From: Epithemia pelagica
Taxonomy: Eukaryota; Protista; Bacillariophyta
DNA: 64,000 bases
NCBI GenBank assembly: GCA_946965045.2
Contig: OX337239.1
Coordinates: 3,224,001 to 3,288,000 of the forward strand
Direction: 5' to 3'
Numbering within the stretch: position 1 is the stretch's first letter; each line of letters starts with the position of its first letter. The notes under the pieces are model-generated. The model saw only the letters and a program-made list of their open reading frames with translations, was not told the DNA's origin and searched no databases. The translations under genes and the position numbers were made by a program. Positions 9,290 through 50,557 of the stretch are shown here, piece after piece.

Positions 9290-11000
9290 AGGACATGGAA
9301 CAGACTCCAGCATATAATAAAATGTCATTGCAACAGCAAGTGCCACCAATGGCTCGTCAGGGACGCTACTGACTGTTTTGTCATGAAATGTATCCATTTC
9401 AGGAATCACATGGTATAGGTTCCTTGGGGAACCCCCAACAACACACTCCCAGTGGCGCAACAATACTCATGTCTCGATCGCACTGTCGTCGTCATTCTCA
9501 CCAACAAGGTCATTGACGGACCCATCGCGCTGCTGCGTACCACTTGGTAATTGTTATGAAGCAACAAGAAGACTGGAGCCTTTATTGTGTGGCATTGTTG
9601 TGAGGAATGCGGCCAATGTCAAAGAGATCATGACGACAATGTACTCTGCCGCCGATTGCCAATGGTAGCCGGGGCAACAAACACGAGGCATTTACTTCTC
9701 TTTGTCGCAAGGATTGGCTGGACGGAAAAAGACCAACGATTGGAAGACACGTACTCGCCATGGGCGTGGAATGGAACAAGGAAGCCATCAAGCTAGACCA
9801 ACGAGTGTTCGCTGGGGCTCGATGATTCACCAAACAACACGACGGTCGACCGCCACATGGTCGATGCTTTCATCCTCCTGGCGACAACAACGACAGCCAC
9901 AACAATCACCGCTCTCTTGTTTGTGTTGGTCATCGCGCCGTTCCGTCGACGACACTGGCCATTGGAGCCGAATTTTTGGGCGGCAAAAAGGAACAGGAAG
10001 AATTTTACGATCTGCGGACGACACGGACAACAACAAGTCCAATGGCGCATCCTGGGATCGATTTGCCGACCGATTGACCTTTTCGGACGACACGGTGGTC
10101 AGTGTGGCCCGACAACTGCAACGTTGCATTTATCAAGTCTTGTATGAGGACGCCGAATTGGAACCTGTGACAGACAACAATGAGGTGGAGTTGCAGGCCT
10201 ATGCCACCACGTTGGTATGGGAAAACACGCTTTGAGTCGTTGTACCTCCAATCTAAGAAACCCAAAACAACCAACATGAATCCATTGGAAGCGTTGAGAC
10301 AGTGTTCCTTGGATGACTTTGAACGTATTGATGGGGCCCTTACGGAGGGTCGACCACTCCCCAACCACACGTATAAAAAGATCCACGGCCTGTGGGCAAT
10401 GTCGTTGCTTCTCGTCGACTCGGTATGCGTAAAGAACCAACAACCAGACAGACTGTGGACCCTTCATTGCATGTCTGTATATTCCAACAACAACAATAAA
10501 ACATCACCTTCATCACTGTTACAGGCATTCTCCGTCGACGCTTCAAGGCCTGCAGCAACTGGATTGTCCATTTTTGTCAAGTTTCTTCTTGTTCTTGGAA
10601 AAGAATACTAACAGGACTCTAGACTTGTCTTGACCAGAAATGTTCCACTTGGTCCGCAAAGCCACATGGTGGCCACCTCTTCTTGTTGGCACCCGCCAAC
10701 AAATTGCTGTTCTACTATACACTATACTAGAGGGGATTGGAAACAAACTTTGGTTGTAGGCAATGGGCATCCAGCCAGTGGTGTTCTGCAAATCGAGAGA
10801 ATGACGGAGGAGCACGTTCCCTCTTGTGCTGGTATTATGCTATTAGTTCCCAAGGGCGTTTGGCAGGGCTCGGACAAGAGAGACGTATTGCTGGGGTTCT
10901 TTGCGAGAGGCACCACGACACACTGTACTACTACGACGACGCATCCCAAAATTATACATGGCGACGAAAGTGACCTTTGCCAGTACCACGACAACGACAG
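9290..11000 (+). repeat. Decayed gene-like repeat upstream of K2; paralogs ~20880-21870 and ~32630-33480
   Basis: Shared blocks such as CACACTCCCAGTGGCGCAACA, CAACAACCAGACA and TTCCCAAGGGCGTTTGGCA; only short broken ORFs; product unknown. Confidence 0.6.
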
Positions 11001-16989: not shown

Positions 16990-17700
16990 CTCCCTCGTTA
17001 TTGTCATTGGCCAAGCCGCTCCCCATCGCGATGTCTTGCCCCCTCAATGCCAGTTCCACCGAAACCTTGTTGCACGACAACAACACTGTCGAACAGCACT
17101 GTTCGACCTCGATCACGGCATCCTTTGTGCCTCGTACGGAACTCAGAAGCACCAACAACACAACCGCGACAACGAATGCCGGCGGTCATGTCTTGGCTGT
17201 CTTGGAAGCCTTGCCACCCACACCGTATGAAGGGTTGGTCGTGTTGGAACGCTAGTAGTCGCCCGAGGCGGTTTTGCTCGTCGCAATCCGAATGGCCCAA
17301 TTCATCTATCTGTTTTTGCCAATTGTCGCAATGGACCAGAACGACAACAAGGAATCGAGTCTTGTCGTTGCCACACCACAACCTCCCGAACTACCAACGC
17401 AGCCACAAAACAAGAAGGCGGTCATCTTTCCTCTTCCTAGCATACCTCAATTGGACGAAACTGACGGTGCCATTGCCGTGTAACCAACTGTGTTCAATTC
17501 CATCTTGGAAGTCGGAGCATTGACGACGACGACAACGAGTCAGGCAACGTCCACCACCACTACTTCCTGTCGCAGCATTGCTCGTCCGGTTGCTCATGCC
17601 TGGAAACAAGCTCCTCCTCATCGCGATGTCGTGCCCCTCGATGACAGTTCCGCCGAAACCTTGTTGCACGATTACAACACTGTCGCACAAGAGTACTCTA
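16990..17700. repeat. Dispersed repeat family B (CATCGCGATGTCTTGCCCCTCAATGCCAGTTCCACCGAAACCTTGTTGCACGAC core); also ~1050-1200, ~23930-24430, ~50050-50357 and 59178-59345
   Basis: Same core occurs at least five times; no intact long ORF on either strand; the LINE is inserted into one copy. Confidence 0.75.
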
Positions 17701-17866: not shown

Positions 17867-17992
17867 ACTGGCACACCTTTCTGTCGCCGCGGTCTCCACG
17901 CAAAAAAGCAAAGCTTCCACGCGTTGCTGTATTATTATTACAAAAATACCCTCTGCCATTTTTCTTGTCAACGTATTAGTAAAGCCGTGACC

Positions 17993-19177
17993 ATGACAAC
18001 GACACTGAAAGAACAAGCATGGCAGTCGGGCCTTGTCCTGTTAGACGAGACACATGAATGGAATTTCGAGGACTGGCCTCCTCTTGAGGGTGAATGGCGT
18101 TCTCGTCATGCTTCGGTCGTACTGAATCATCCCGATAACAACCAAGAACAAACCGTCGTCGTGTTGGGTGGATATCGAACAGGTCAATGCGAGCTCGATT
18201 CGGTTCTTACATTGAATCTATCACACCCCAGCAAGCAGTGGCGAGAAGGACCATCCATGGACAAGACACGTGCTGGACATGCCGCTGTTGTTTGCAATGG
18301 CGGCGTGTACGTGATGGGAGGATACAGTCGAGGACTTTTGGATTGTATTGAACGAATCGATGCCAATGATTTGCTTCGATCATCCTTTACAACCACCACC
18401 ACACAGGATAGTTATTGGACAACATTGACATGTCGATTATCAACGGGACGAGTGGGATGTTGTGCTGTTGCCGTGCACAACCGATACATCGTTGTAATGG
18501 GTGGACGCAGCAATCGTTATTGGTCGTCGGTGGATATTGTTGATACCAGCAATCACACTCTCATTGAGGGACCATCTATGACTGTTCCTCGATCATACTT
18601 TGACAGCGCAGTCGTTGGACACCGCATCTTTGTCGTTGGAGGCCGAAACGATGACAATGTACTTGATTCGGTGGAGTATTTGGACTTTGCAGAGGAGAGA
18701 AAAGACGACTCTTTGACGACAGTCATTTCCTTCTCGTCCGCTTGGACCACTCACTCTGAATTGGTGCTTTCCAACCCTCGAGCTTTTTGTGCAATGGTAG
18801 CCGTGGGATCTTGTCTGGTGGTGGCGGGAGGACGAGGCAATTTAAGTGTGGAAGTCTTGGATACGCACCGCAACCGTGTGTGGAATCTCCCTGGACTGCA
18901 AGAAGATCGTTGGGGCTGCAGTATGGTGTCTGTTCCCAATCAAGTTGCCGTGATTGGTGGATGGCGCACTACTTCCTGTGCGACATTGCCACTAATGGAT
19001 AGGAATTCGTGGTGCTTTCGTCGACTCTGTGAGCAGCAATCGAACGGATGGTATGATTCTCTTGAAGGTATGGGTATCCGAGATGATGATATTTCTCCCT
19101 TCTCCACCTCGACATCAGCTCATAAACGAACAAAGCCCGATACACGCCGTGGTGATGAAGGCAAGGATGGAACTTGA
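17993..19177 (+). CDS. Kelch-repeat protein K4
   Basis: ATG 17993 (MTTTLKEQAW); six blades; blades 2-5 nearly identical to K1. Confidence 0.92.
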   Translation: MTTTLKEQAWQSGLVLLDETHEWNFEDWPPLEGEWRSRHASVVLNHPDNNQEQTVVVLGGYRTGQCELDSVLTLNLSHPSKQWREGPSMDKTRAGHAAVVCNGGVYVMGGYSRGLLDCIERIDANDLLRSSFTTTTTQDSYWTTLTCRLSTGRVGCCAVAVHNRYIVVMGGRSNRYWSSVDIVDTSNHTLIEGPSMTVPRSYFDSAVVGHRIFVVGGRNDDNVLDSVEYLDFAEERKDDSLTTVISFSSAWTTHSELVLSNPRAFCAMVAVGSCLVVAGGRGNLSVEVLDTHRNRVWNLPGLQEDRWGCSMVSVPNQVAVIGGWRTTSCATLPLMDRNSWCFRRLCEQQSNGWYDSLEGMGIRDDDISPFSTSTSAHKRTKPDTRRGDEGKDGT

Positions 19178-22148
19178 AATTTGCAACGTATTGCATGTAT
19201 GTCCCAACAATAGCGGAACTATAGCATTATCATTTTTTCTCAAACTGCAGTTTGATTGTTTTCTTCATGGCATTGCGACCTAAAGAGATATCACATACAC
19301 CTTTGTACTAGTAGAAGACGAAAGTTACACCATCCGGCATGACACTGCAAACAGGAGTGGAGCCAGGCCTTGGGTAGATGGCCATGGTACCATGCCTCTC
19401 TGCTGTTGATGGGGTCGAGTAATCATGCTGTGGAAGATTATGGTTACGTGCCTGAAACACTAGGCGTAGCGACTCGTTTAGACGGTCGTCTTCATTCCGA
19501 CCATGCGTTCAATTGTGAGGTCCGGTCCTTCTATGGCGAATGCCTGCGTGAGAGGACAGTACCCCGTCTCTCGACGTTTGTGGTTTCGGGTGACAGGACA
19601 TTTGTGAATCGTTGGAATTTGTGACACCGACGTGTTCGATATTTTCTCCAATATTGCAACTATACTTTATCATGAGGTCAGCAATTTGCTTGCGTCGAAC
19701 CAGCAATCAGTCTCTCCGAAGTGGCTCGTTGACAGTCCATGGGTATCGGTCCTCGTAGGAAGACTTGAAAGGGCGATGCGACCCTTTCAAATAATCAATT
19801 CTTCACTACTCCAATCGGACGCGTCGGGAGGGAGTTAAATCGCGTTCCATACTTAAATCCGTAGTACTGCACTCCTCGTCACCGGCGCAACTACTCTCTT
19901 GGTCCGACTTTGAGCATTTGTTGCAAACATGACGCTGCCATTCATAGCTGTCCTCATATCCACCAGCCAAGGTTGGGCAGTGGAATGCTCCTCCACTCTT
20001 TTGTCTTGGTTGTAGATCATCCTGGATGCAAGTTGTATGACATTTGCTGTAAAGCTAGATACTTTTTTCGAGCCTCCACATCTTTATGTACCTCCAATGG
20101 GGCGACTTTGTGATCGATTCAGCAGGTCCTCATGGTGTCATGTTGAGAAAGGGTCCAAAATAATTGGCGTCTAGACTGCCATGCAGTGCCACAACACAAA
20201 GAGATTTATCTGGTCTTGTTGCTGGCGTCAATCCTGATTTACTAGTTGGTCAGTACTGGAGGAGGATTCTCGTTCCAAGAAAGACATGTGGATCAGGAAG
20301 CATAACATTGTCCTAGTGCTCTTCTTTTGCTGTTGTTGTTGTTGTTGTTGTTTGTTACACTAGACCTCCTGTTGCGAATCGAAAGCCAAGGTACGATTTC
20401 TAGCTTGTTGCGATGAAAGTTGTCGTTGAGTATTAGAGTCTTCTTTTGAGTCTTCCTCCACGGGAGACATGAGAGCGAGTCACAGCAGAAAACGCTGCCA
20501 GAAGGCGCGAAAAGGTCAATCTCCGAAACCAAAGACGGCGACGACGGCGACAGACACATTGTGGTGCTTGCTGATGGTATCTTTTTGTCGTTCGTTTCAA
20601 TGGATATTCCCCCAAACTGATGTGGAGTCCCCCTCCCCCAAAGTCTGTGAGTCCCTTCCAAATCTTGGTCGCGGAATGAGGACATGAATGGCTCGCAGGC
20701 GCGCCGACCGAGACGAGCAGTGTTACTCTAAAATATCGATTGATGTCGTCGCCAAAAAACGACCACTCTAATAGAATCTACTGCTACACTCAATGGGAAA
20801 CAAGGCATCTAGCATCTACGGTATCATCCCAACGGCAACGGCGTTCGATCCACGGCCATGGCGGCCAAAGAATGATCATCCCAATTGGCAGTCTAAACTC
20901 ATGGCAGGTATTCCTTGGGAAACATCCAACCACACTCCCACTGGCGCAACAGATGGACCCATGACATGCATTGCGCAACCTGCCGGTGCTTTTTGTAAAA
21001 GACGCCTAGCCAGGTTGCCAAGGTCAACAGTTTACAAGCACCGTACCATGCCATGTCAGCAGCAAGTGGCCTTGGCCTTTTGATCCGTTGTATTACTGGG
21101 GTTCTTCGCGAGAGACACCACGACCCATGGCAAAAATTGCAGGATGACAAAACTGACCTGAGCCAGTACCATGACAGCGACCGGTACCCGTCATGACCAT
21201 CGACCAGCAGGATGGAACAACAAGAGCAGTACCAACAACAACAGCTCGGTCGACGAAACAACAACAGCTCGGTCGAACCAAGTTCCTTCCCAGACGAGAC
21301 TCGCATCACTTCCCAGGTCTCCATCCACGACCAGTACACAGTGCCGTTGCTTTTTCGTCGACTCGGTATTTGTTGATGGGAACCAACAACCAGACACACT
21401 GTGGAGTATTCATTGCATGGTTGGATATTCCATGGCACTGTGATTTGGGATGATTGAAAAATGCCAACCAGATCACGACTATACTCTACTCCACCGCCCA
21501 TTTCAAGTGACATCAGCAACAACCACAAAAGATCTGAAACGAATCCACACCACATTCATTGCTCTTACGTGTATTCCCGGCTGATGCTTCAAGGTCTGCA
21601 GCAACTGGATTGTCCTTTTACGTCATCTTTCGTATTGTTCGGTACTAGAAGGACTCTTCTTGTCTTCACCAGAAATGATCCACTCGGTTCCCAAAGTCAC
21701 ATGGTGGCCACCTTTTCTTGTTGGCACCCACCAGCACATTGCTGATTTCTGCTCTCTAGGGATTGGAAACAAGCCTTGGTTGCAGGCAAGGAGCATCCTG
21801 CCATTCGCAGAAAAACATGCCCTATCGGTATACTGCTAGTGTTCCCAAGGGCGTTTGGCAGAGCTCGGACATTGGCGGAAACTAGAGACGACGGAATGAC
21901 GAACATGTCAGTAAGCAGTGCAACCGCAATTATGGGTATAGCAGCGGCGGCAAGGATGCCGAAACGATGACAATCTGGCTACGGTCACGATTTGTCTCGT
22001 GCCGAAAGCTCCTGTCCATCCATTTCGTCAAGTCAGTCGTGCTTCCAGTCCGCACCCATCACAATCACAACAGCAGAGCAAACCTACCTGCCTCTTACAA
22101 GACAGTGTCTCGATCATCATAAATTCTGTAGTCGAAACGTTTGCAACC

Positions 22149-23348
22149 ATGACCACAACACTGAAAGAACAAGCATGGCTGTCAGGCCTTGTCCTTTCCG
22201 ACAAGACACCCGAGTGGAATTTCGAGGACTTGCCTCCGCTTGAGGGTGGATGGCGAGAGTATCATACATCGGTCGTGCTAAATCATCTCGGTGCGGACAA
22301 CAACAGACAAACCATTGTCGTGTTGGGTGGATACCGAGCAGGTCAAGGCGAGCTCGATTCAGTTCTTGTACTGAATTTAGCAGACCCAAAGAAGCAGTGG
22401 CGAGAAGGGCCATCCATGAACAAGGCACGTTATAAACATGCTGCTGTTGTGTGCAATAGAGGGGTCTACGTGATGGGAGGATACACTAATAGATATTCAA
22501 GTTTGGATTGTATCGAACAAATTAATGCCACCGATTTGCTCCAACCATCTTCGACATCAAGCAGCTCGAAGAAGAGCCATTGGACGACATTGACATGCCG
22601 GTTATCAGTGGAACGATCAGGATGTTGTGCTGTTGCGGTTCACAACCGATACATCGTTGTAATGGGTGGCAATAACAACGATGGTTATTTGTCGTCAGTG
22701 GATATCATTGATACCAACAATCACACTGTCACTGTGGGACCAAGCATGACTGTTCCACGACAATCGTGTGCCAGTGCAATCGTTGGTCACCGCATCTTTG
22801 TCGTTGGAGGTCATAACGATAATGGCCATCTTTACTCGGTGGAGTATTTGGACTATGCAACACCCTGTGACAAGGATGCAACAAAAAAGGAGATAGGCTC
22901 GACATTCATTTCTTTCTCGTCCACCTGGATCACTCATCCTGAGTTGGTGCTTTCCAATGCACGATTATCTTGTGCAATGGTTGCGATGGGATCCTGTCTG
23001 GTTGTGACGGGAGGATTCGAATCATCTGTGGAAGTGTTGGATACGCGCCGCAACCGTGTGTGGAATCTCCCACCATTCACTAACTACCACAATGGTTGTA
23101 CTATGGTGACTGTTGCCAATCAAGTTGCCGTGATTGGTGGATGGCGCAATCCTACCTGTGTGACATTGCCACTAATGGATAGGAATTCGTGGTGTTTTCG
23201 TCGACTTTGTGAGCAGCAATCGAACGGATGGTATCATTCTCTTGAAGGTATAGGTATCCGAGATGCTGATATCTTGACATTGGCATCAGCACGTCAACGC
23301 GCAAGGTCCAATACTCAAAGTGGTGATGAAGGGGCGGATGAAGCCTAG
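22149..23348 (+). CDS. Kelch-repeat protein K5
   Basis: ATG 22149; six blades; mosaic of K2-, K3- and K7-like segments. Confidence 0.92.
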   Translation: MTTTLKEQAWLSGLVLSDKTPEWNFEDLPPLEGGWREYHTSVVLNHLGADNNRQTIVVLGGYRAGQGELDSVLVLNLADPKKQWREGPSMNKARYKHAAVVCNRGVYVMGGYTNRYSSLDCIEQINATDLLQPSSTSSSSKKSHWTTLTCRLSVERSGCCAVAVHNRYIVVMGGNNNDGYLSSVDIIDTNNHTVTVGPSMTVPRQSCASAIVGHRIFVVGGHNDNGHLYSVEYLDYATPCDKDATKKEIGSTFISFSSTWITHPELVLSNARLSCAMVAMGSCLVVTGGFESSVEVLDTRRNRVWNLPPFTNYHNGCTMVTVANQVAVIGGWRNPTCVTLPLMDRNSWCFRRLCEQQSNGWYHSLEGIGIRDADILTLASARQRARSNTQSGDEGADEA

Positions 23349-24650
23349 CCGTTTATTTCTCGAGTGGTTGACTTGTTTTCTACATTCGATTGCAATACTA
23401 GAACCTAGTATTAAGTGTTTACTCAAAAGTAGAAAGAACATGTTGCAAGAAAGAAGGTGCTTGTTTGTTATGGAAGGATCGATCCCACTTTTATATCTCT
23501 ACAAGTGGTACTGCGCTTCGGCCATTACCTGTTTCCTGTCAGTTGTGGGACAGTGCCACCACCGTGGCTGTGTAGTCGTGAGACTAGAATCGGGTACTTT
23601 GTGGTGGCGTCATGGCACTCTACATAACACAGCGTGGTCCATGGAATGGTAGCTGTGGCACAACCAATGAGAGGAGCAGGAACAGAAGCACACCAAGGCG
23701 AAACCTTGTTGGACCTGATGTTGTCCGCTTCGAATGGTTCTTCCTCGAAAGATGACAATGGGTCGACTTTGGATGGAAGTAAGGAGGGAGGACCATCTCA
23801 TATCCAATTCCGACGTTTTGGTCAAGAGCAGGTTGTCCCTTTCGGAGGAGTCACCGCTCCAATCGCAATGCCTTCTTCTAGTTGCTGTTGCATGTGAATC
23901 GCAATACGTTGCTGCACTTGTCATGTGATGTCAAGCCGGAATGGCCCAATGAAGATGACGAGTCCAAGAGGAACCCACCAAATCAGATCGAGGGTCGTCC
24001 CAATTGTCGCAATGGACCAGAACGAAAACAAGGAATCGAGTCTCGACGTTGCGACGAGACAGACAGGACACCTCCCCCCACCACTACTTTCTGTCGCAGC
24101 ATTGCTCGTTCAACTGCTCATGCCTGGAAACATGCCGCTCTCCATCGCGATGTCTTGCCCCTCAATGCCAGTTCCACCGAAACCTTGTTGCACGACAACA
24201 ACGCTGTCGAACAGCAGTGTTGGACCTTGACCACTACATCCTTTGTGCATCGTACCGAACTCAGCAGCAGCACCAACAACACAACCACGACAACGAATGC
24301 CGCCGATCATGTCTTGGCCATTATGGAAGCCTTGCCACCCACACCGTATGAATGGTTGTTGGTGTTGGAACACGAGTCGCCCGAGGCGGTTGTGGTCGAA
24401 TGGTTTTGCTCGTCGCAGTCGGAATGGCGAAATTCGTGTATATGCTCGGAGCTATACCTGATCGAACCAAGTATCCATGACGGTGAGCGTTTGCTGTGGC
24501 AACGGTTGATTGTTTTCTTGCCTTGAGGAGAATGTGGTCGGAACAGGGCTCGATGGTTCGGACGTCAATGGCAAAAAGGGTTGTGGGTAAGTAAAAGTCT
24601 GGGAAACCTTGTGGTGTGAGACTGCCTGAACAACCAGTATGTGGTAAGTC

Positions 24651-24862
24651 TACTTTAATAGCTGAGGGTGGACGAGGAGGAGCTAGGGTGTGAGGAGTGG
24701 CTCAGCTCCGAGAAGGGCAATAGCGACGAGGAGTGGACTGCCCCTGTGAGATCCGCGTAAGCGGATCGAGGGGGCAGTCCACGACGAGAAGCTATTGCCC
24801 GACGAGGAGTTAAGCCACGAGGAGCGCCCTGCGATGAGGAGTCCCTCAGGGCTATTAAAGTA
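24651..24862 (+). ncRNA. Candidate structured RNA (or ssDNA) element: 212-nt rod-like hairpin with GA-rich symmetric internal loops and GUAA tetraloop
   Basis: Perfect stems 24651-62/24851-62, 24715-24/24791-800, 24733-44/24771-82, 24750-56/24761-67; near-perfect 24698-709/24806-17 and 24685-90/24825-30. The fold is read from sequence; transcription is not shown. Confidence 0.5.
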
Positions 24863-25195
24863 TGTTAGCTTCCTTTGTCACGAGGAGTCGTGCCAGCGCA
24901 CCCAAGGTAATTTTCGATCATATTAAGTGATCGGTTCTCTGAATGGATACTTAGTAGTCGTGAGCCTAATTAGTGTTACACATTTAGGCAGGCCTAATTT
25001 TTGATAGGGCACTAGGTAATCTTCAATTCTTTGTAAATAACCGCGTCAAATAAGTGATCACATCCGATTACATCGGATGATTTATAACGGTTTACCCTAA
25101 GTATCATTCGTTTTACATATGTAGAAAGCCAATCAATTTCCGAGGCGTGATTGTTGTATAAATAAGATAACAGAATACTTGGAGTCAATGTTTGT

Positions 25196-25230
25196 CCCCC
25201 ACCCACACCCACCCCCACCCCGACCCGACC
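25196..25230 (-). other. Potential G-quadruplex (minus strand GGGTCGGGGTGGGGGTGGGTGTGGGTGGGGG)
   Basis: Six tracts of three or more G with short linkers. Confidence 0.55.
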
Positions 25231-26439
25231 ACAACCACACTGATTAAACGACACAACAACTATTTTTCATGATTACACTAGAATAAAAACTCTAAGTACA
25301 GTAATTTTTGGGGCTTAGGTAGTGTGAGTGTGGCGAGTGACTCACTCCTCAGTGAGTGGGGAAGGGCACGACGACGGTAGAACGACGAGTGGTGAAGGTA
25401 GAATTCAACACCCACCAAGAATCGGACATGTGCACCACGGCCAAATCGGACGTCAGGTCAGCGAGACGTTTTACCTGGAACACGGCAAACTCAAAGGTTA
25501 AGTGATGATTGTCCGTCAGAACACCAAACCGCGCGGTGGAACCTGACCAATTCGACTACGCAATGTGAGATATTGGCCATCTTGCTTCTTCTGGGCGATA
25601 AAGAGAGCGGCGTAGCATCCCAATTCCCGACTGTCGCAAGGTCTTGAGTGGCATTCAATCGTGCCACGATGTGGGACGTTGAGACTTTGTCATTGTCTCT
25701 TCAAGGTCCTGCTGCTATTGTCTTGAGGCAGAGCCGCAGTCGTCATCATCCTGCTAGTCATCATGGTTGCTTGATGAAGCCAGGGAAAAGCTTGACTGGT
25801 GGTGGTCGTTGTAGGGAGGGGAGGTGTCTTGTTGGTGTGTGGTTATTGGTGAAAGCAACCTCACCACTCGTTGTTCTGCCACAGCTGAGTGACCGTTGAC
25901 CAAACTCGAGGCCTGTTCCACTCCTGTACATTCCTGACCCATCCGCAGATGCAACCGTCCACAATTGGATTTGTTCATTGCAAAGGCTGGTTTCTCTTAA
26001 TTGTCGTGACAGTGGGGTCCTCATCTGGTTTGGCTCTATAAAAGGCTGTCGGTCGTTTTGATGTAACATGTAACATGGCTTTCGGATGGAACAATGTCTT
26101 TTGCCCAAATTCCTTATGCTAGTCAACGAAAGACATGAGGATACTTCGACGCCTTGTTCTTGTGGATGTTGTCCATCGTTTGGTTTTGGGAACAGACGCG
26201 CATCTTTTGGGGAAAGATACGCTGTGCTTGCTGTGGTCCTGTCATGAAGTCTATGTGCGATATCGTACGTACGACAGACGCTCTCTGGGCTCCAAAGCTT
26301 CCACGTGTATTCTACTGTAAGAGTCCTCTCGCTTCCATCCATCGATCCATATTCCATATATTACCAAAACAACTCACAACAGCCGCAAAAGCACTCTTCT
26401 GTGATCCACATAAATTCTGCAGTCAAAACGTTTGGAAGC

Positions 26440-27591
26440 ATGCCCATGACATTGAAAGAACAAGCATGGCAGTCGGGCCTTGTCTTATCGGACGACACAG
26501 CAGAATGGAATGAAAACGATTGGCCTCCTCTCGAGGGTGGATGGCGTTGGTTTCATACATCGGTCGTACTGAATCATCCCGATAACAACCAAGAACAAAC
26601 CGTCGTCGTGTTGGGTGGATATCGACCACGTCAAGGCGAGCTCGATTCCATTCATGTATTAAACTTGGCAGAATCAAACAAGCAGTGGCGAGAAGGGCCG
26701 TCCATGGACAAGAAACGTGGGCATCATGCCGCTGTTGTGTGCAATGGCGGCGTCTACGTGATGGGAGGATACTCTGAAGGTTCATGTTTGAATTGTATCG
26801 AACGAATTGATGCCAATTATTTGCTGCATTCATCCTTCACAACCAGCAGCACACACGAGATCCAATGGACGACATTGACATGTCGCTTATCAACGCAACG
26901 AAGAGGATGTTGTGCGGTTGCGGTGCACAGCCGGTATATCGTTTTAATGGGTGGCTACAACGGTGGCTACAACGATGGTTATTTGTCGTCGGTGGACATT
27001 CTTGATACCAGGAATCACATTATCACTGCTGGACCGTCCATGACTGTTCCACGACAATATTGTGCCAGTGCGGTTATTGGTCATCGCATCTTTGTCGTTG
27101 GAGGTTGGAACGAGCGTGGCAATCTTGACGCGGTGGAGTATTTGGACTATACAACACCCTGTGACAGTGATGAGACAAAAAAGGAAACTGGTTCGACTTT
27201 CATATCTTCCTCGTCCACTTGGATCACTCATTCGGCGTTGAGGCTTTCCAATGCACGAGGTTCCTGTGCAATGGTTGCCGTGGGATCTTGTCTCGTCGTG
27301 GCAGGAGGACAAAACATTCGAACCGTGGAAATCTTGGATACGAACCGCAACCACGTGTGGAATCTCCCACCATTCGGAAATCACCATCATGGCTGCTCTA
27401 TGGTGACTGTTGCCAATCAACTTGCCGTGATTGGTGGACGTCGGAATCCTTCATGTGCAACATTACCACTAATGGATCGGAATTCGTGGTGTTTTCGCCG
27501 TCTCTGTGAACAGCAACTTAGCGGGTGGCATCTTTTTCGGGAAGGAATGGACATTTCGTCCTTCTCCACCTCGAGATCAAAATCTGAATGA
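26440..27591 (+). CDS. Kelch-repeat protein K6 (short C-terminal tail, no KRxR motif)
   Basis: ATG 26440 (MPMTLKEQAW); six blades; ends SRSKSE. Confidence 0.9.
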   Translation: MPMTLKEQAWQSGLVLSDDTAEWNENDWPPLEGGWRWFHTSVVLNHPDNNQEQTVVVLGGYRPRQGELDSIHVLNLAESNKQWREGPSMDKKRGHHAAVVCNGGVYVMGGYSEGSCLNCIERIDANYLLHSSFTTSSTHEIQWTTLTCRLSTQRRGCCAVAVHSRYIVLMGGYNGGYNDGYLSSVDILDTRNHIITAGPSMTVPRQYCASAVIGHRIFVVGGWNERGNLDAVEYLDYTTPCDSDETKKETGSTFISSSSTWITHSALRLSNARGSCAMVAVGSCLVVAGGQNIRTVEILDTNRNHVWNLPPFGNHHHGCSMVTVANQLAVIGGRRNPSCATLPLMDRNSWCFRRLCEQQLSGWHLFREGMDISSFSTSRSKSE

Positions 27592-29606
27592 ACAATGACC
27601 AGTATGTACTAAAAGGCAAGGATGAAACTTGAAATGGGCAACATATTGCACTGATGTCCTGCAAAAGGGGATACATTATATAGTGTAATCTTTTTGTTCT
27701 GAAACTATTGCTCTAGTGTTTGCATGGCATTGCAAACTATTGAGATATTCATGTACCATCGGTGTAGTAGAAATGAGATTGTGTGACACAGCGTACGGCA
27801 GGGAACGTGATTTCTCGAAACGACGAAAGCCATGGATTATCGAGAGCTTTGCTTTGTGTTGAGTGTTTCTGTCGTCGTGGCCCTTGTTTTGCCAGCCCCT
27901 AGGGATTATGCACATGAAGCGGTCGCTTCTTTTGGCTGGACTCCAAACTTCGATAAGAGTCACAAACTTATCACTCTGACTGTAAGAATAAAATTTGTTC
28001 TATTCTCTGACGGAGCGACGATTATCCCCGTATTTGCCTGGACTGTAAAAGGACGTTGGGATTTGCCATGTGTCCGACTATAAAGTCAAGAGCAATCACA
28101 GGACAATCTTCGCACACCCCTTCAATCACGGTATGGGGATCGAAACGACCCACCCTCTCCACTTCATGTTCCTGAAATTCTTGTTTCAAATCTTTTGGAA
28201 TCAATCCCAAGTACCAATAGTGACCTTCGCAAACTTGAGCAATCGAACCCGATACTGACTACTTGGCATTTGGTGAAGGTTCTTGGATATTACGTGTCTA
28301 CCAAGGATTGCACATGCCAGCAATAATGGAAAAACGGAGACGATGCACGACGACGTTCCACAGAGATGCCTTGCACTGGTACCGACGGGAGGACAAACAT
28401 TTGTTGTCTAACCATCCAAGTGACATTTCAAGCAGTCGATGATGACTCATCGTCAATCATTGGATTGAAGACGATTCGACAGAGGACGAGCCATGGGCAA
28501 AGATGCGGACAACATTGAGAAAAGAGAGATTTGTCGTTTCCCAATGAGAGAATGAGTCGAGGCCTCGTCTGCGGCCTGCTTGGCCATCGTCAACATCCGT
28601 TGTTGCAGTTGAAGCAAGGTAAGGTTGGTACAGCATGTCGATCGGCCGGTATACACCAACTCGCCATTCCGACAAGAAAGGTTCCATCGCTTCGCGAAGC
28701 AACCGATGCAGCACGGATTATATGGCGTAACCGATGAGACAACAATTGTATGGCTTGTCTATGACTCGTGAGAAACGTCTTGCACTGGTCCGCCAGGTTA
28801 CGAGCCCAAATTGAGGTGCCCATCCATATTGCCAGTGCCACGGCTCAAGAATTCAGAACGGCAATGGCACGGAGCAGCCACCATCCACCATAGGCCATAG
28901 GGTATCATTGGCAAGAGTGACTCCCCATCGAGAGTTTTCGCATCTTTTGGCGGATCTTTGCTCTCAGTAGATTGGAGAGATTCGCATTCGAACTTGCCGG
29001 TCCATGCAAACTCTCATGCTCCACCACCATTCGTCCTTTCATGTTGGGACTGATCCTGGGCCTCGCCATTCAATTGTCACGGATTGAAGGAGGCCACTTC
29101 ATGGTTGTTGTCCTCAATCATCGCTTCTTGAAGAGACATGTTGGTAAAATTGATTGATAAGGTCAAGTCGTCGTCGTCCTCATCATCGCCGTCATCATCG
29201 TCGATAATAGTCCCCAGCGGCAACGGGGGTGAGGAGTGGGGTCGCATGTGTGTCGTGCTTTTGATGTTCACACTTCAGACTACTCATTCACTAATCCTCA
29301 TGACTCACCCCCGCGGTGGGTTTTTGTACATCCAAAAAGCCTGTACTTACAATCCTTAGGCTATCTCCACCCGAGCGCCGCTATGCTGACGTATTCGAGC
29401 TTTCTGATTGGCCTCGCTATCCGGATAGCGGGTTAGCGGAGCCAAGAGGAAATGAACTCCACGATCTCCGTTATACAATAGTGCCGCTATTGATAAGGCA
29501 TTTGCAAATTCACATATGCCCTATCTTGTTTCGGTTAAAGAATGAGAGGGGAGAGGAGTCATCAAACAATAGTCAGCAAGAACAGACCAAAGTTTGCTCA
29601 AAAAAG

Positions 29607-30941
29607 ATGGAGGACTCGTTGGATGAACTGTTGGAGCTGCTCCAACAGGAGGCAGATGTTGACATTGGTGTAGCTTCTACAGTTGCATCTGACCTCCTGG
29701 AACAACATACTAGCACCCAACATGGTGGTTCGCCTAAAGGAAAGGCACCAAACAAGAGTCGTGACTTTGACGAAGCGTACAAGCGATTGGTGCGCAATTA
29801 CTTTGATGGAGAAAACTCCATCTACGACGAGGCAGACTTTGAGCGTCGGTTCCGATTACCCCGCGCAGTTTTCAATCAGATATACAACCAACTTTATGGT
29901 AGTGGTTGCTTCACGCAACATTACATGCTTGATGGACGTCCTGGGATCAACCCACTTGTGCGTCTTGTGGCTTGCTTTCGGAAGATTGCTTATGGAGATG
30001 CTGATGACAGGGAAGATGAAAATCTTTGCTTGTCTGAGTCGGTCTTACATGAATCCTTTGAGCAATTCTTATCCCTTATCAAACAACATTTTGCCAAAGA
30101 CTATTTAAATCGCCAACCTTCGTCTTCGGAAAAGGAGCACGCGTTGAAGAAAAATGCTGCTCGTAACTTCCCAGGTTGCTTTGCGTCATGGGATTGCAAG
30201 CATTTCAATTGGGAAAACTGTCCTAAAGCTTGGGAAGGGCAAGTCCGTGGAAAGGAGGGTGTCACCACTCTTGTATTGGAAGCAATTTGTGATCCTGACT
30301 TGTACATTTGGTTTTTCTTTTTTGGGCAACCAGGGACTTTGAACGACATAAACATTCTGGATAAGAGTTCCATAGTTGGCGCAATGGTGAATGGCTCCTT
30401 TGATTTTTCATGTCCCGCTCCATACAAGATAGGACCAAATTGGAGAGACTACATGTACTTCTTGGTGGATGGTATCTATCCAGACTGGTCCATTTTCATT
30501 GATTCCTGTCAGGGCTCTGATGAAGAAAAGCTCAAGTATTTTTCATCATGTCAAGAAGCCGTCCGTAAAGACATTGAACGCTGTTTTGGTGTTCTGGTTA
30601 AGAGGTTCCATATTCTCAAGCGACCTCTGCGGTTCTGGACCCGATCAAAAATTGGAGATGTGTTGGATTGTTGTATTATCCTACACAACATGTGTGTCGA
30701 GCATGGACGTGGCACGGATCCGATGGATGTCGATAGCGAAAACATGGCGTTCAATGCCGAGACAGATGAAGTCGTGTCGTTGTTTGGTGCACCAGCCGAG
30801 GAAGTTGGTGCTGTCGGAGGAAGTGGAATTCAAGCCATTCTCCAGCATGCTCATTTGCAGGAGAATATCCAGGACTCGCAACAAAAAATATCCCTAAAAG
30901 GCGACCTGATTGAACATGCATGGTCTAAACGTAACGGGTAG
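29607..30941 (+). CDS. Harbinger/PIF DDE transposase (~444 aa)
   Basis: ASWDCKHF (D), GTLNDINIL, YFLVDGIYP (D), RKDIERCFGVL (E), CIILHNM. The ORF-track start at 29316 lies outside the TIR, so ATG 29607 is preferred. Confidence 0.9.
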   Translation: MEDSLDELLELLQQEADVDIGVASTVASDLLEQHTSTQHGGSPKGKAPNKSRDFDEAYKRLVRNYFDGENSIYDEADFERRFRLPRAVFNQIYNQLYGSGCFTQHYMLDGRPGINPLVRLVACFRKIAYGDADDREDENLCLSESVLHESFEQFLSLIKQHFAKDYLNRQPSSSEKEHALKKNAARNFPGCFASWDCKHFNWENCPKAWEGQVRGKEGVTTLVLEAICDPDLYIWFFFFGQPGTLNDINILDKSSIVGAMVNGSFDFSCPAPYKIGPNWRDYMYFLVDGIYPDWSIFIDSCQGSDEEKLKYFSSCQEAVRKDIERCFGVLVKRFHILKRPLRFWTRSKIGDVLDCCIILHNMCVEHGRGTDPMDVDSENMAFNAETDEVVSLFGAPAEEVGAVGGSGIQAILQHAHLQENIQDSQQKISLKGDLIEHAWSKRNG

Positions 30942-30949
30942 GTTAATCA

Positions 30950-31909
30950 CTAAATACTAGTTGCAAGCTGGTTGAGTGCAACCGCCACTTCAGATTCATC
31001 GCCGTCCATAATTTCTGTAGAGTTAGTGCTTTCTTCTGGGTCATTTTCATTGTCACCTTCGTTTGTACCAGGTTCATTTTCTTTTTCACCTTCACCAGCG
31101 CTAGACAGGTTTTGTCCATATTTACGCAAGGTTTCTTCAAGAAGCTGTTGCTTGAGTTGGTAAACTTGGTCCTTGTGAGTCTCACCACACAATGAGATAA
31201 CGCTCTTCAGCTGTGCCAGACGCCCAATGCTCTCTAACTGTTTATTACGGTGCTCGATAGCAAGGCGGAGTCTCTTTGCTTCTTCAAGCCGTTCTCGTGT
31301 CTCATCAGTCTTTTTGTTCTTGAGCATTTTTGATTTTGCCATGTCTCGACCACCAGGACGACTCTTGCTGTTGGGCTTAGGAGTAGATGCCACTTGTTCC
31401 GCGTCTGCTGAGGAATCAAAAACGGAGTCCGTCACGTCGTCATCCTCTCCAGAGTTGGACGAAGAGGACTCGGCAACAGCAAATTTAGGGATATCTTTTA
31501 ATTCGATCCATGCCAGATAGTTGGGCCACTGGCATGCATCAAAGCTCTTGAAAAGGTAGGAAGGAAGCGAACTTTTTTTGAGGTGAATCGCCACTGCCAT
31601 GTTTATTTTCTGTTGCTTGTCCACACCACTTAGATTTGCTCCTTCGACCAACCGCAACACACTGTTGAACTTCTGGATGTCTGCGAAAACTCTATCACGC
31701 AAATGTCCAAAAATGGACGCGGTGGAGCGATAGTGGTAGCATTGTTTGTCGCAACCATGTGGGGCAAGTGCTGCAATGTTTACTTTTACCTTTTCACGGA
31801 ATATATCAGCTTTCTGGTCAGCACCAGAAATAGGGTCGGCAGAGGCCCTCTTCCACGCAAGTGCAGCAATGCGCTTTTCTTCAGGTGACCACACAGACCC
31901 ACGACCCAT
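30950..31909 (-). CDS. Harbinger ORF2, Myb/SANT-like (trihelix-type) DNA-binding protein, 319 aa
   Basis: N-terminal MGRGSVWSPEEKRIAALAWKRASADPISGADQKADIF, plus a basic RPGGRDMAK segment and a coiled coil; position matches the second gene of Harbinger elements. Confidence 0.82.
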   Translation of the reverse strand: MGRGSVWSPEEKRIAALAWKRASADPISGADQKADIFREKVKVNIAALAPHGCDKQCYHYRSTASIFGHLRDRVFADIQKFNSVLRLVEGANLSGVDKQQKINMAVAIHLKKSSLPSYLFKSFDACQWPNYLAWIELKDIPKFAVAESSSSNSGEDDDVTDSVFDSSADAEQVASTPKPNSKSRPGGRDMAKSKMLKNKKTDETRERLEEAKRLRLAIEHRNKQLESIGRLAQLKSVISLCGETHKDQVYQLKQQLLEETLRKYGQNLSSAGEGEKENEPGTNEGDNENDPEESTNSTEIMDGDESEVAVALNQLATSI

Positions 31910-32312
31910 GTTTTCTGTTTGATTGTTTTATGAAGGAGGCATAGAAAACACAACCATGAAACCCAAGAGATGGCATGCGATCGCTACCATGCCATCTCTT
32001 CGGCGGGAGAGATTCAAAAACACAACAGAATACACAAACCCACGACCGATGTTTTCTGTTTGATTGTTTTATGAAGGAGGCATAAAAAACACCAGCATGA
32101 AACCCAAGAGATGCCATGCGATCGCTACCATGCCACCTCTTCGGCGGGAGAGATTCAAAAACACAACAGAATACACAGACCCACGACCGATGTTTTCTGT
32201 TTGATTGTTTTATGAAGGAGGCATAAAAAACACCAGCATGAAACCCAAGAGATGCCATGCCATCGCTACCATGCCACCTCTTCGGCGGGAGAGATTCAAA
32301 AACACTACAGAA
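31891..32312. repeat. Three tandem copies of a 141-bp unit, each with an internal inverted repeat
   Basis: TTTTCTGTTT recurs at 31911, 32052 and 32193. Copy 1 has a perfect 13-bp IR AAGAGATGGCATG / CATGCCATCTCTT (31965-77 / 31988-32000). Confidence 0.93.
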
Positions 32313-34290
32313 CCAAATGAAGGGGACGCTGTTGGCATCATGCGTTGATTTATTTATGCCTACGGTTACCGCGATCCGCTATTTTTCCTGCTATTGGGGG
32401 CCCCAAATAGCGGCAAAAATAGCGGATAGGGGAGCTGTTTAGCGGTTAGAGGAGGTGGTGGAGTTCAATAGCGGTATTTGGACCATTAGCGGCCCCGGGT
32501 GGAGATAGCCTTAGGACAGTAAAAGCTATCAGAAACGCTAGAGGAATGTTTCGTGGCGTGGAGAACAACAGATCGACTGATATGACGACGAATCACCATG
32601 TGAATGTGGACGAGACGAACCTATTGTGTTGATTCACTCCGCTCCTCGCATGGTCCTGCAAATCGCAACCCATCACCACCAACGCAACAGACTCCAGCAT
32701 ATAATATAGAATGTCGTTCCAACAGCAATGGCCGCCTGCAATAGAACCACACCACAAGTGCCACCATCCCACCAATTGCTCTCGTCAGGGACGCTTCTGA
32801 CTGTCGAATCCAAGCAGGGTGAATCAAGAAACTCCCTTTGTTATGAAATGTATCCATTACAGGCCAACCACACACTCCCAGTGGCGCAACAATACTCATG
32901 TCTCGATCATCCATGTCCAGTGCACTGTCGTCGTTATTTGCCACCAACAAGGTGCTGACACTGTCATCGACGGACCCACCGCGAGCTTCTCTGCCCACCA
33001 CTTCGTACCGGTTGAAACGCAACAAAGCTGTGGAGCCTTTCTTGCTTGGCATTGTTGTGACGGATGCTGTCAATGTCAAACAGATCATGACGACAATGCA
33101 CTCCATCACCCATGGCAAAAGGCAAGTGGCAACAGGAGCCACAACCACAACGGAACCTTCATTGCTGTTTCAGGCATTTTCCTTTCATGCTTCAAGGCCA
33201 GCAACTTGATTGTTCTTTTTGACACCTTTCTTGTTATTCCAAAAGAGTACTACTCCAAAGGTTCGTGGTGGTCGTCACAAAGACGCCACTGGCTTCACAA
33301 CGCCAAAATCGCCACTTTTGTGTGTGGGACCCACCAATACAGTGTGTTTGTTTGGGAATGGCAACAAGCCATGGTTCCTTCCGGCAATGAGAGTATCGTG
33401 CCATTATTCTTCGAGTCGAGAGGATGATGGAGGAGCCACCTGCACTATCGGTATACTAATTCCCAAGGGCGTTTGGCAAAGCTCGGGCAAAAAGGAATGG
33501 CGGCAAGCACAACAATCATTGCAGTCATAGTCATGGGAGTTACAGTCGATCATATTTTCTCGGCAACTGGAGAGAAATCTCAAGATCAGTGTCTTCCTTT
33601 TGCGACAGAAGAGCCTCGAAAGAGTCCGCTCAAGGCGCAGACGTGGCCTGTGCGAAATGGTCGAGTCATTGTTTGTTACTCTGAATCGACCAAGCGTAAC
33701 AATCATGAGGGAGGGGTATCCTCTTTTGGTTTACAGGCCGAGGAAAAGTGTTCTGTCATGATTGAAATTCTTGTCTCGTGTAATCCACTTCGCCATCCCT
33801 CTAGAAGACGTGTAGTTGTGGTTATCAAAAGGAAAGGCTCAAAAAGTAGAATTTGCAAAGAGATCCTGCAGTCATCAGCGTTCTTCTCTGGTTTGGCTAC
33901 CGGCAGCAATAAGGCTGCCACACGCCACAACCAACCAGAGAGAGAGAGTCTCGTCGCACGAAAAACCTATGGATGCAACACAAGGAGACAGAGAAATAGA
34001 GAGGAGCTATGCATACCAGTGGTTCTGTGTCTTGCCATGAGGTTTATTTCGGTATCCAAAAACTTTTCCACGATACTCCCAAGAGGGATGCGTGGTCTTC
34101 TTCATTGTGTGGCTACGGTCACGATTTGTCTCGTGACGAAAGCGACCCATCTTTGGTCTATCCATTTCGTGAAATCAGTCGTGCTTCCAGTCCGCACCCA
34201 TCCGAATCACAGGAGCAAAGCAAAACCACTAACCGCTTACAATACAGTGCCTCGGCCCTTACAAATTCTGCAGTCGAAACGTTTGCAACA

Positions 34291-38477: not shown

Positions 38478-38720
38478 TGTTGAAACTCAAACAAGCCGTG
38501 CCGTAAAAGCAACTCTTTATAGGCTTATCGAACTACGTAATCTCCTTAGAATGAACACTTGCTTGTTCATCTTGCCTAATGTTGCTTTTGCCACGTCGAC
38601 GGACTAAAGTCCATGCTTCGGCATCTTCATCATTCAAGTTTGGATCCTTTGCTTCCGAATCACTCTCTTTAGTCGCGGCTTGTTCGCTGCTACTCGTCGC
38701 CCGGTCACATATCCTCAACA
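38478..38720 (-). repeat. Copia 3' LTR (243 bp)
   Basis: Identical to 44311-44538 except for an extra 15 bp (ATTCAAGTTTGGATC). Confidence 0.96.
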
Positions 38721-40282
38721 CACTCCTTTGGGCCGAGGAGTGATACTTACTACTCGGGACCACATTCATGATGATATCCCGCAGGCGATAAAAAGCTTGA
38801 CCCTGCAACGGTTTTGTAAAGAAATCAGCGATCATCTCATCAGTCGGACAGAAACGCACACTCACGTCCTTTCGGCGAATACAATCTGTGATATAGAAAT
38901 ATCGTAGATTGATGTGTTTGGTTCTCTTTGAGCTCGATAACCGACCGTTTCTTTCCAGTAGGATACTGCTCTGATTGTCCTGGTGCAGGACAACGTTCTT
39001 TACTTCATGTCCTTGGGCTCTCAGAAAGTTCTGGCTCCATAACATTGACGGTAACACGTCGTGCACGCCTATCAACTCACATTCGGTTGAACTTCGCGCC
39101 ACAAGTTTTTGTTTTGATGAGGCCGTCATGACGGCACCCTTGCCCATAGTCATTACTCCGCCGGTCTGTCCTTTCATGTCTGAGTGAGTAGCGAAGGAGG
39201 CATCCACCCACCAACAGAGTGTTCCAGATCCATCACCCTCTAGTCGTAGGATCAGATCCTTGGTTGATTGTAGGTACTTGAGAACCCGACCGAGCTTTCT
39301 CTGATCATCAACGTCTGGATTCATGACACGAGTGCTAAAAAAGGCCACAGCAGTGCGTATATCTGGCCGTCCTCTTTGCGCCATGTACGCTAACTGCATT
39401 GTTACACTATGGAATCGATCTGCCTCCTCCTCATTGAGTTTTTGAGCGTTCGGGTCCGTATGATATAGATGCTTAGCAGCGGGTGACCGTGCTTTACCGA
39501 TCCATTCTTTTGGTAGCGAGATCAAAATGGTGTCCAGGTAGGATCTCATGTCCACCTGCACAACCCCATCCTCTCCATAGTCTAAGAACATGCCCAAATA
39601 GTCGTGCCTTGTTCCTTCCGACACGGAGATTTCTCCCAACTGTCCAAACTCTGCTTTGAGTTCGCCCTTCTCATATGTTAGATAAGGGGCATATGCTTCA
39701 TAATCGACTTCTAGGAGTAGCTCAGCCATTAGTCCAGTAAGCCGCATATACACGCCAGGATCCATGTCCGAGTGCATAAACGCACCTGGGATGTCTGCCA
39801 CAGCAACCACACGTCGTTCCAGGGCATCAATGACGGCAGTGATGAATACAGAATCGGTGGCCACGGTAGGAGAAGCTGAATCTTCCTTGTCTATGTACGC
39901 ACGTTGTTTGCGCCCGTCGGCACAGCCTCGTCCTTTTATCTTGCCACACCGTTTTCGTTTCAAAAACATTAGGTAACCTAGTGCTTGTTGCACCTCATTC
40001 CAGCTGAGGTCAGTTTTGTGTACTGCCCTCAATACTCCTCTATCATGCAATTGTTGGATTTCCACCTTCACGGCGGCCACTCCCTTGTTTCCAAACAGTT
40101 TGATGCCCTTCTTCATAGGCATCTGCGGTGTGGCTTGATTCACCTCACTCGCTACAAGAAACAACACTCCATCTCGAAGGATTCCATCATAGCGCCCTCC
40201 TTTTAGAGTATCGATGCAGGCAAACGAGTGCCCGTATCGGTGCGCGTAGCTCCTTTCACGGTTTGGCCGTAGATTGTATCTG

Positions 40283-40352
<70 letters not shown>

Positions 40353-40422
40353 GACGTACCGGATCAGCCTCGCTGTTATCGTCGGTACCTTCATTAGCGT
40401 CAATGTCTTGTCCCTCTTCCAT
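38533..40422 (-). pseudogene. Copia RT-RNase H segment with an in-frame deletion of the RT catalytic core; out of frame with gag-PR-IN
   Basis: KGRGCADGRKQR, SPTV, DIPGAF, DYLGM and RNase H (VDASF, SSTECEL, QDNQS, KHINLRY, ADFFTKPL) are present. The LxKALYG and (Y/H)VDD motifs are missing at the EKGE|LKAEFG junction (~39660). Confidence 0.88.
40285..40353 (-). repeat. (CAA)23 encoding Q23 in the IN-RT linker
   Basis: 23 TTG units on the + strand, in frame with the RT ORF. Confidence 0.93.
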
Positions 40423-40436
40423 CTCCTCTCCACCGG

Positions 40437-49526: not shown

Positions 49527-50557
49527 AATTTGCAACGTACTGCATGTATGTCCTAACATTAGCGGAACTATATGGCATTATCATTTTACTCTCAAACAGT
49601 AGTTGGATTGTTTTCTTCATGGCATTGCGAACTATAGAGATATCATGTACACCGTTGTACTAGTAGAAAATGAAAGTTACACCATCCGGCATGAAACCGC
49701 AAACAGGAGTGGAGCCAGGCCTCGGGTAGATGTTCATGGTACCATGCCTCTCTGTGCTGTTGAATGGGTCGAGTTATCATGCTGTGGAAGATTATATGGC
49801 TACGTGCCCGAAACAACATGGCGCAGCGACTTATTTGGACGGTCATCTTCGTTCCGACCATGCGTTTAATTGTGTGGAGTCCGGTCCTTCTATGGCTAAT
49901 GCCTGCGTAAGAGGGCAGTGCCCCGTCTTTCGATGCTCGTGGCGGTTTTGGGTGACAGGACAATTGCGAATCCTTTGGAATTTTTCACACCGACGTGTTC
50001 GATATTTCCTCCAATACAGCAACTATTCTATATCATGAGGTCGGTAATTTGCTCGCAATGGACCGAACGGCAACACGGAATCGAGTCTCGTCGTTCCCAC
50101 ACCACAACCTTCCGAACTACGAACGCAGCCACAAATGAAGAAGTACCTAAATTGGACGAAACTGCTGACGGCGCTATTGCCGTGGAACCGGCTGTGTTCA
50201 ATTCCATCTTGGAAGTCGGAGCATTGACGGCGGCGACGACAACGACAACGAATCAGGAAACCTCCACCACCGCTATTCCCTGTCGCACTATTGCTCGTTC
50301 GAATGCTAATGCCTGGAAACAAGCTGCTCCCCATCGCAATGTCTTGCCTTTCAATGATACAAATACAACTCATAGATTAGTCTTTTTAACTCTAGACTGC
50401 CCAAGGCTTTTACGTCGCTTCCTCACAGACAGATCCAAAGATAGATACTGTCGCAGAAGTCGACCAGGAACACAGTAGAAAACACGATAGAAAACACGAT
50501 AAGGAAAGTAAGCCACACATAAAAGAAGGGAACTGAGAACCGGAAGGAGACACAGCT

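Follow-up and report, generated by a model that had tools for sequence, protein, structure and literature searches.

The 64-kb stretch of DNA analyzed here (the window) carries approximately 11 intronless Kelch-repeat genes between positions 6500 and 61700, arranged in tandem on the same strand and 60 to 90% identical to one another (for example, 17924-19177, 21999-23348, and 26305-27591). At least 778 relatives of this family are contained in the protein collection; the 120 best ones listed all came from ENA. All loci of this genome with which the window was compared are in one ENA assembly, ERZ21939226, in which contig ctg1334l (here L001) represents the region of the window in another haplotype or strain. 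A PIF/Harbinger element of 3.15 kb (29361-32508) with a 541-aa transposase open reading frame (ORF) (29316-30941) is missing from L001 (otherwise 99.5% identical), in which positions 29360 and 32509 of the window map to the adjacent positions 12915 and 12909, and is an insertion polymorphism. The best named relatives of its transposase are in the diatom Nitzschia inconspicua (47 to 49% identity), and the window, whose gene and transposon content is eukaryotic, probably comes from a diatom. The G+C content of the window is 55 to 58% between 50000 and 60000, compared to approximately 48% elsewhere. A LINE-type ORF of 1,796 aa with endonuclease and reverse transcriptase (50927-56317, minus strand) and two long ORFs with no Pfam match (56387-57670 and 57701-58951) are also present. 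Three consecutive ORFs of 629, 1,039, and 230 aa at 38533-43556 (minus strand) have a weak Copia-type reverse transcriptase match and probably constitute an LTR retrotransposon. Copies of an approximately 300-nt repeat (24079-24435) are scattered between the Kelch genes (17012-17303, 17551-17689, 59167-59339, 1048-1193, and 50254-50356; 83 to 89% identical). It overlaps a 214-aa ORF (23882-24526), which has no family match and is probably not a gene. Microsatellites of the (TTG)n/(CAA)n type, up to approximately 100 nt long, were located at 1794-1834, 40258-40357, and 48439-48484.

The feature under study is a short element, here termed H1, whose 5' part folds into a long rod. Its parts and target halves, with the evidence that defines each of them, are as follows.

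24641-24644, plus strand: left target half, host GTGG (fits GTNG), directly 5' of the element; similarity to locus L057 begins right after it.
24645-24973, plus strand: H1-type nonautonomous element of 329 nt, consisting of a 9-mer, the rod, and a tail ending in TTAG (alignment with L057).
24645-24653, plus strand: 5' terminal 9-mer, TAAGTCTAC, whose final three bases open the hairpin (homologous 9-mers in H1b, E2, and H3).
24651-24862, plus strand: rod hairpin of 212 nt (RNAfold).
24697-24818, plus strand: conserved rod core of three stems and GA loops, alignable with E2 and partly with H3 (alignment A5, model R1).
24750-24767, plus strand: apical 7-bp stem and GTAA loop (RNAfold; stem kept in E2).
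24863-24973, plus strand: 3' tail of 111 nt, common to H1b up to the terminal TTAG.
24974-24981, plus strand: host right flank TGTTACAC, the right target half, which fits N6 followed by AC (AC at positions 7 and 8).

RNAfold predicts a single unbranched rod of 74 pairs for the plus strand of 24651-24862, with a minimum free energy (MFE) of −132.1 kcal/mol. Dinucleotide shuffles of the same sequence had a mean of −69.4 ± 4.4 (z = −14.4), and none of the 200 folded equally well. The 212-nt hairpin reported in a preliminary description of this DNA is therefore real and lies far outside chance expectation, and its seven nested stems and loop pairs were recovered in the RNAfold parse. In a scan of the 64 kb that took in every 220-nt window of either strand (mean, −58.6; standard deviation, 11.1), the rod locus is the lone extreme and the strongest fold. 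The minus strand of the hairpin reaches −105.8 kcal/mol (z = −11.8), and with DNA parameters the values are −58.3 for the plus strand and −52.6 for the minus strand. Six G-U pairs are formed on the plus strand and one on the minus strand.

Neither similarity searches nor a covariance model (R1; see below) detected a further copy of the rod within the 64-kb window. Near matches and near-complementary sites of its 21-mers in the rest of the window did not exceed the shuffle level, and no source or target of its stems was found above that level elsewhere in the window. Rfam 15 gave no match at the gathering threshold for the window and six related loci, and none at an E value of ≤10 for region 24300-25200. 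With nothing at or near threshold, the earlier statement that the hairpin could be assigned to no known RNA family holds. A coding reading of the GAG repeats was ruled out by stop codons in every frame.

The loop pairs of the window rod (GAGGAGGA/GATGAGGA, GAGGA/GAGGA, GAGAA/GACGA, and GACGAGGA/GACGAGAA) are nearly pure purine, and those of the two arms are identical in the 5'-to-3' direction at 22 of 26 positions. The apex consists of GTGA/GA, followed by the 7-bp stem and the GTAA loop. The 5-by-5 and 8-by-8 loops resolve into 2-by-2 GA/GA units (tandem G·A) between single Watson-Crick pairs. As these units alternate with single Watson-Crick pairs, the rod amounts to a nearly continuous helix. 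The longest uninterrupted stems measure 13 to 15 bp.

The borders of the window element follow from a second H1-type copy (H1b), located at L057 18977-19305, which is 92% identical and has unrelated flanks on both sides. In place of the host GTGG of the window, L057 has GTAG at the matching position, and the 3' end is fixed at 24973 by this same copy. The readings that H1 occupies the same site as the L001 E2 copy and that it extends to 25397 were overturned by the second H1 copy. Sequences homologous to the 5' terminal 9-mer are TAAATCTAC in H1b, TAATTCTAC and TATATCTAC in E2, and TATTAATAC in H3. A mini-hairpin inside the tail (24879-24892) carries CGAGGAG, a motif also of the rod; apart from one weak stretch, no similarity was detectable between the tails of H1 and E2. 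Both rod and element are identical in L001, but as the background divergence is only approximately 0.3%, this identity is uninformative. Shortly after the 3' end of the element, the sequences of the two haplotypes are unrelated (window 25036-25397 versus L001 8546-8952). The 362 nt in the window were found nowhere else in the data examined. The L001 segment is a 407-nt copy of a repeat, Y, with more copies at L001 16060-16468 and L047 6319-6722; part of the Y repeat also lies upstream of the element, at window 24446-24637.

A fold scan of L001 revealed a second rod (H2), located on the opposite strand, which follows the same plan and is homologous over its inner 120 nt. A spurious ORF across H2 was used as a handle for protein searches, and its relatives led to four further loci. 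H2 belongs to a unit of approximately 375 to 380 nt, E2, of which six copies are 93 to 98% identical and lie in unrelated surroundings, the unit alone being shared. Internal deletions have removed part of the 5' arm of a seventh E2 copy, in L053. In the E2 copy at L052 9986-10190, an internal stretch of 23 nt in the rod's outer 5' arm is tandemly duplicated, which lengthens the predicted fold to −153.6 kcal/mol. A third and far more diverged rod, H3 (L052 19017-19192), emerged from a fold scan of these loci and was also recovered by R1. An exhaustive protein search with the spurious E2 ORF returned the known loci and one deleted copy and nothing else. Patterns of conserved anchors had no matches in JGI metagenomes, IMG/VR, or GTDB genomes, and a pattern derived from the terminal stems of the rod (TACTTTAATAGC / GCTATTAAAGTA) had none in IMG/VR. 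A loop-only pattern hit 45 loci in IMG/VR, which are in-frame acidic coding repeats, none with a rod-like fold, and were discarded. As far as these searches reach, the family seems to be a small one that does not extend beyond this assembly. The census comprises nine insertions and one true allelic empty site. The suggestion that copies of the hairpin might belong to a mobile element is borne out: the rod copies form the 5' part of a dispersed, insertion-polymorphic element.

The same order of junctions was observed at the nine insertions: host GTNG, element starting with TA (a 9-mer ending in AC), rod, tail ending in TAG, and host N6-AC. The host tetranucleotide was present at 9/9 insertions (as GTGG, GTAG, or GTTG), the element ended in TAG (TAA in one copy), and AC occupied positions 7 and 8 of the right flank at 8/9. 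None of the nine insertions has a target-site duplication. Likewise, there are no terminal inverted repeats: the palindrome lies within the 5' part, and no complementarity exists between the 5' end (TA..AC plus rod) and the tail ending in TAG at the 3' end. Insertion is seamless and of one polarity, immediately 3' of the host GTNG within GTNG-N6-AC. In six E2 copies, the host tetranucleotide covaries with the 9-mer, GTTG occurring with TAATT.. and GTAG with TATAT... With so small a sample (n = 6), this is no more than a hint, which would agree with recognition of the target through the end of the element itself.

Empty sites were available for comparison at three places. L054 is the other haplotype of L052 (99.2 to 99.7% identical) and lacks L052 17995-19394. 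The missing segment corresponds to the H3 element, whose 9-mer harbors a nested, unrelated inverted-repeat transposon of approximately 1 kb, and the allelic empty site is exact (GTAG|TAAACC in L054 versus GTAG|element|TAAACC in L052). L054 also lacks a 2.6-kb element with a piggyBac-type transposase ORF (DDE_Tnp_1_7) at L052 10584-13226. The join of that element looks like a 3-base duplication; a four-base duplication is usual in the piggyBac superfamily. Two paralogous empty sites are seamless as well. One is the Y''-X junction in L001, compared with the E2-bearing unit, and the other lies in L050, between paralogues A and B of a fatty acid hydroxylase gene. The L050 paralogues, which encode the fatty-acid-hydroxylase domain, are arranged in tandem (8081-8877 and 9259-10441), and the 5' splice sites of their first introns appear to be offset by three bases. 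Junction models with a TA, TWA, or 4-bp duplication do not fit the empty sites.

Some copies lie within or next to other transposons. The E2 copy of L051 is nested in a 2.3-kb element (L051 8569-10906) that has terminal inverted repeats of 28 nt and is flanked by a TA duplication, and this host element is missing from haplotype L055. L049 has two E2 copies, inverted relative to each other, on either side of a 4.5-kb stretch with a Harbinger-like ORF. Each of them has complete junctions of the solo type, and they represent two different E2 sub-variants; the pair is thus best read as two insertions rather than as the two ends of one element.

Covariance model R1 was built on alignment A5, which comprises the H1 and E2 cores. 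It scores the window core at 95.6 bits, the E2 copies at 137 to 146 bits, and H3 at 36.6 bits (E = 4.8e−6). Between H1 and E2, four pairs have changed on both sides with pairing kept; six slid registers used as a control all gave zero such pairs, and 7 of 500 shuffles reached four. In addition, a 2-bp indel is matched on both arms. H3 shares only one stem, GGGCAAT/ATTGCCC, with the other subfamilies, and its plan consists of 7- to 13-bp stems between GA/GA units. As three diverged subfamilies have the direct-loop plan in common and their stems have changed in a compensatory manner, the rod is under selection and is no simple foldback, in agreement with the preliminary description, which had pointed to the same orientation of the loops on the two arms as the reason for rejecting a foldback. 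Selection at the level of the family keeps the rod: the sequences of the stems vary, and their complementarity stays. Among the substitutions in young E2 copies, A·C mismatches are approximately as frequent as G·U wobbles, so that pairing is not maintained in place after insertion. This mismatch pattern is what neutral decay after insertion would predict.

Comparison of the subfamilies also separates the conserved parts of the rod from those peculiar to one copy. At least four 2-by-2 GA/GA units are present in each of H1, E2, and H3. The G·A interruptions persist as tandem mismatches and are present on one strand only. One GA unit of H1 is replaced by two Watson-Crick pairs in E2, which suits positions that form part of a helix better than the open loops implied by the multiple protein-binding sites of the preliminary description. 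At the apex, the loop is GTAA in H1 and H1b, GTCA in E2, and GCAC in H3, and the H3 apical stem, with 4 bp, differs from the 7-bp stem of H1; the GNRA cap singled out in the preliminary description is therefore not a conserved feature. Its kink-turn-like apex proved to be approximate and specific to H1, as E2 has a one-sided UUCU bulge without G·A and H3 has neither bulge nor G·A. The same applies to the excess of G-U pairs on the plus strand. Sense-to-antisense counts are 6:1 in H1 and 3:0 in H1b, but 0 to 1:2 to 3 in E2 and 3:4 in H3, and no family trait is evident. An H1 stem with a C·A mismatch and a G·U wobble is a perfect 13-bp stem in H1b, which points to decay as the probable origin of these two imperfections. 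In each copy, the more stable fold is that of the sense strand. The constant feature is the presence of purine-purine interruptions on the strand that also sets the polarity of the element.

Taken together, these observations show that the rod forms the conserved 5' part of short (approximately 330 to 385 nt), noncoding, nonautonomous mobile elements, a family with at least three subfamilies. We propose, with a probability of roughly 55%, that it is a structural module that acts single-stranded in mobility. The element has an unusual architecture and integration signature, and we could place it in no described superfamily. The G·A/G·A units would stabilize the helix only in the purine-bearing single strand. 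Since they occur on one strand only and the element has a strict polarity, the rod most likely works when the purine-bearing strand is single stranded. It may be a structure recognized by a putative mobilizing enzyme, or it may hold the end of the element during excision or insertion, for which the subterminal hairpins of single-strand (HUH-type) transposons could serve as a working analogy. A tyrosine recombinase would be an alternative route to seamless joins. Within the approximately 310 kb of assembly read, we detected no autonomous partner, the gene tables of these loci contained no HUH nuclease or helicase domain, and no tyrosine recombinase gene was found in them. The host site GTNG and the element end ..TAG share a core of 3 to 4 bases, with differences in some copies (GTTG versus GTAG). 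The target has an outer dyad symmetry (GT...AC), which is more typical of a dimeric protein on duplex DNA and counts against the single-strand reading, as do the great length of the rod, the thin census, and the mismatches that arise in young copies. A more far-reaching version, in which the G·A-studded rod would be the single-stranded DNA substrate of an HUH-like or other enzyme in a nuclear eukaryotic family of the "peel-and-paste" type, with the host tetranucleotide read via the 5' 9-mer, is quite unlikely; to our knowledge, single-strand peel-and-paste transposition is so far known in prokaryotes only.

Several other readings of the rod were weighed against its proposed role as a single-stranded mobility module. 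An intron-like ("introner-like") or RNA-level role, in which the element would be transcribed within host genes and the rod would compact the inserted RNA, seems unlikely, even though a number of features speak for it. Together with the preceding host G, the element starts with GTAAGT in H1 and with GTA in all subfamilies, it ends in TAG (TAA once), and its two ends pair together in the full-length E2 fold. In L050, the copy is on the same strand as the fatty acid hydroxylase gene, both coding parts of which are intact (the exons were searched separately, not joined), and removal of the copy would be phase compatible. G·A breaks every 7 to 15 bp would, in an intron-like element, hide the helix from the double-stranded RNA silencing machinery. 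Intron-like repeats that form hairpins and are seamlessly integrated are known from fungi (PMC8469720) and Amoebophrya (PMC7789003), and introners or intron-generating transposons, some of unknown mechanism, have been reported in diatoms and Parmales (PMC12130899). However, GT-AG removal would delete one host base and leave a −1 frame; as it takes this base, the unit cannot restore a coding exon. Other copies are intergenic or lie inside other transposons. The L050 copy most likely lies inside an older intron instead of being one itself. In the 28 codons upstream of the site, hydroxylase paralogue A has a stop codon and indels that are not multiples of three; the true first exon, further upstream, has an in-frame indel and mostly synonymous differences between the paralogues. 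As an intron that spans the site keeps both paralogues intact, the E2 copy would most likely lie within it, and the idea that E2 forms a complete intron of the L050 hydroxylase was dropped on reading paralogue A.

It is very unlikely that the element is an ordinary foldback or miniature inverted-repeat transposable element (MITE), moved by a nearby DDE transposase of the PIF/Harbinger or mariner-like type, or that the rod gives rise to small silencing RNAs. In favor of the former, this genome has active elements of the Harbinger, piggyBac-like, and TA-duplicating inverted-repeat types, and the inverted E2 pair of L049 surrounds a Harbinger-like ORF. Against this stand the absence of a target-site duplication from 9/9 insertions, the three seamless empty sites, ends that are not inverted repeats (the palindrome being internal to the 5' part), and the complete solo-type junctions and two E2 sub-variants of the L049 copies themselves. 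As for small RNAs, one E2 copy scores 39 bits with the long miRNA-precursor model MIR1858, which is weak compared to its gathering score of 137; stems of ≤15 uninterrupted bp make a poor dicing substrate, and near-complementary 21-mers elsewhere in the window did not exceed the shuffle level. A stand-alone structured noncoding RNA gene, whose kink-turn (K-turn) and GNRA modules would be bound by proteins of the L7Ae type or by export proteins, would be in line with the very strong z-score, the plus-strand preference in H1, and the tandem G·A pairs, which form the core of K-turns. This reading is highly improbable and already largely refuted, as neither the bulge of the apex nor the GNRA loop is conserved, one GA unit is formed by Watson-Crick pairs in E2, and Rfam gave no match at or near threshold. 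Moreover, the copies are multiple, dispersed, and insertion polymorphic, with fixed borders that take in a tail of 110 to 200 nt. The preliminary interpretation is thus upheld in part, for a selected single-strand design but not for an RNA gene of the K-turn/GNRA kind.

Few eukaryotic transposons insert seamlessly and without a duplication, and little is known of the mechanisms involved. The orphan hairpin becomes a defined and previously undescribed mobile-element family with seamless site-specific integration, strict polarity, and a long rod, and the combination of this rod with conserved purine-purine interruptions of one strand makes for an unusual set of traits. As this small and young family is polymorphic between the haplotypes of a single assembly, the sequence by itself reveals in which order events took place. 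In recent surveys, abundant intron-generating elements of algae are still entered with an "unknown mechanism" (PMC12130899). Furthermore, the G·A-interrupted rod offers a natural model for long hairpins that persist in a genome or transcript without forming a perfect duplex.

Among described systems, the fungal introner-like elements and the sister (stw)introns of Hypoxylaceae, as well as the introners of Amoebophrya, are short, repeated, hairpin-forming, and seamlessly inserted without duplications, as is the present element. Symmetric introner-like elements also belong to no Rfam family and carry GT...AG on one strand only, like the element (PMC8469720, PMC7789003). In contrast to these elements, in which the inverted repeats join the two intron ends, the palindrome here fills the 5' part and is followed by a noncomplementary tail, splicing at the apparent sites would shift the frame by one base, and most copies lie outside coding sequence. 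The rod also resembles tandem sheared G·A motifs and K-turns of RNA, since GA opposite GA, flanked by Watson-Crick pairs, recurs throughout. Unlike a K-turn, it has no conserved 3-nt bulge beside the G·A, and the sole K-turn-like spot of H1 is absent from E2 and H3.

Crypton-type elements, which have been reported among intron-generating transposons (PMC12130899), likewise integrate seamlessly. The 3- to 4-base identity between GTNG and the ..TAG end could be a crossover core, but not every copy has the same core in host and element (GTTG versus GTAG). We know of no role for a long, one-strand-specific rod in tyrosine recombinase chemistry. HUH transposons make no duplication, lack inverted termini, have a polarity, insert beside a short specific host sequence, and carry a subterminal hairpin. 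Compared to this group, the termini of the element (TA... and ...TAG) do not have the canonical Helitron signature, and the rod is found at the 5' end only. While HUH hairpins are short and single, the rod measures 176 to 212 nt with 5 to 7 stems and is ten times longer. The element is like IS200/IS605 and Helitrons in its duplication-free insertion, noninverted termini, strict polarity, and short specific host site, and it shares with them the subterminal hairpin that is their hallmark.
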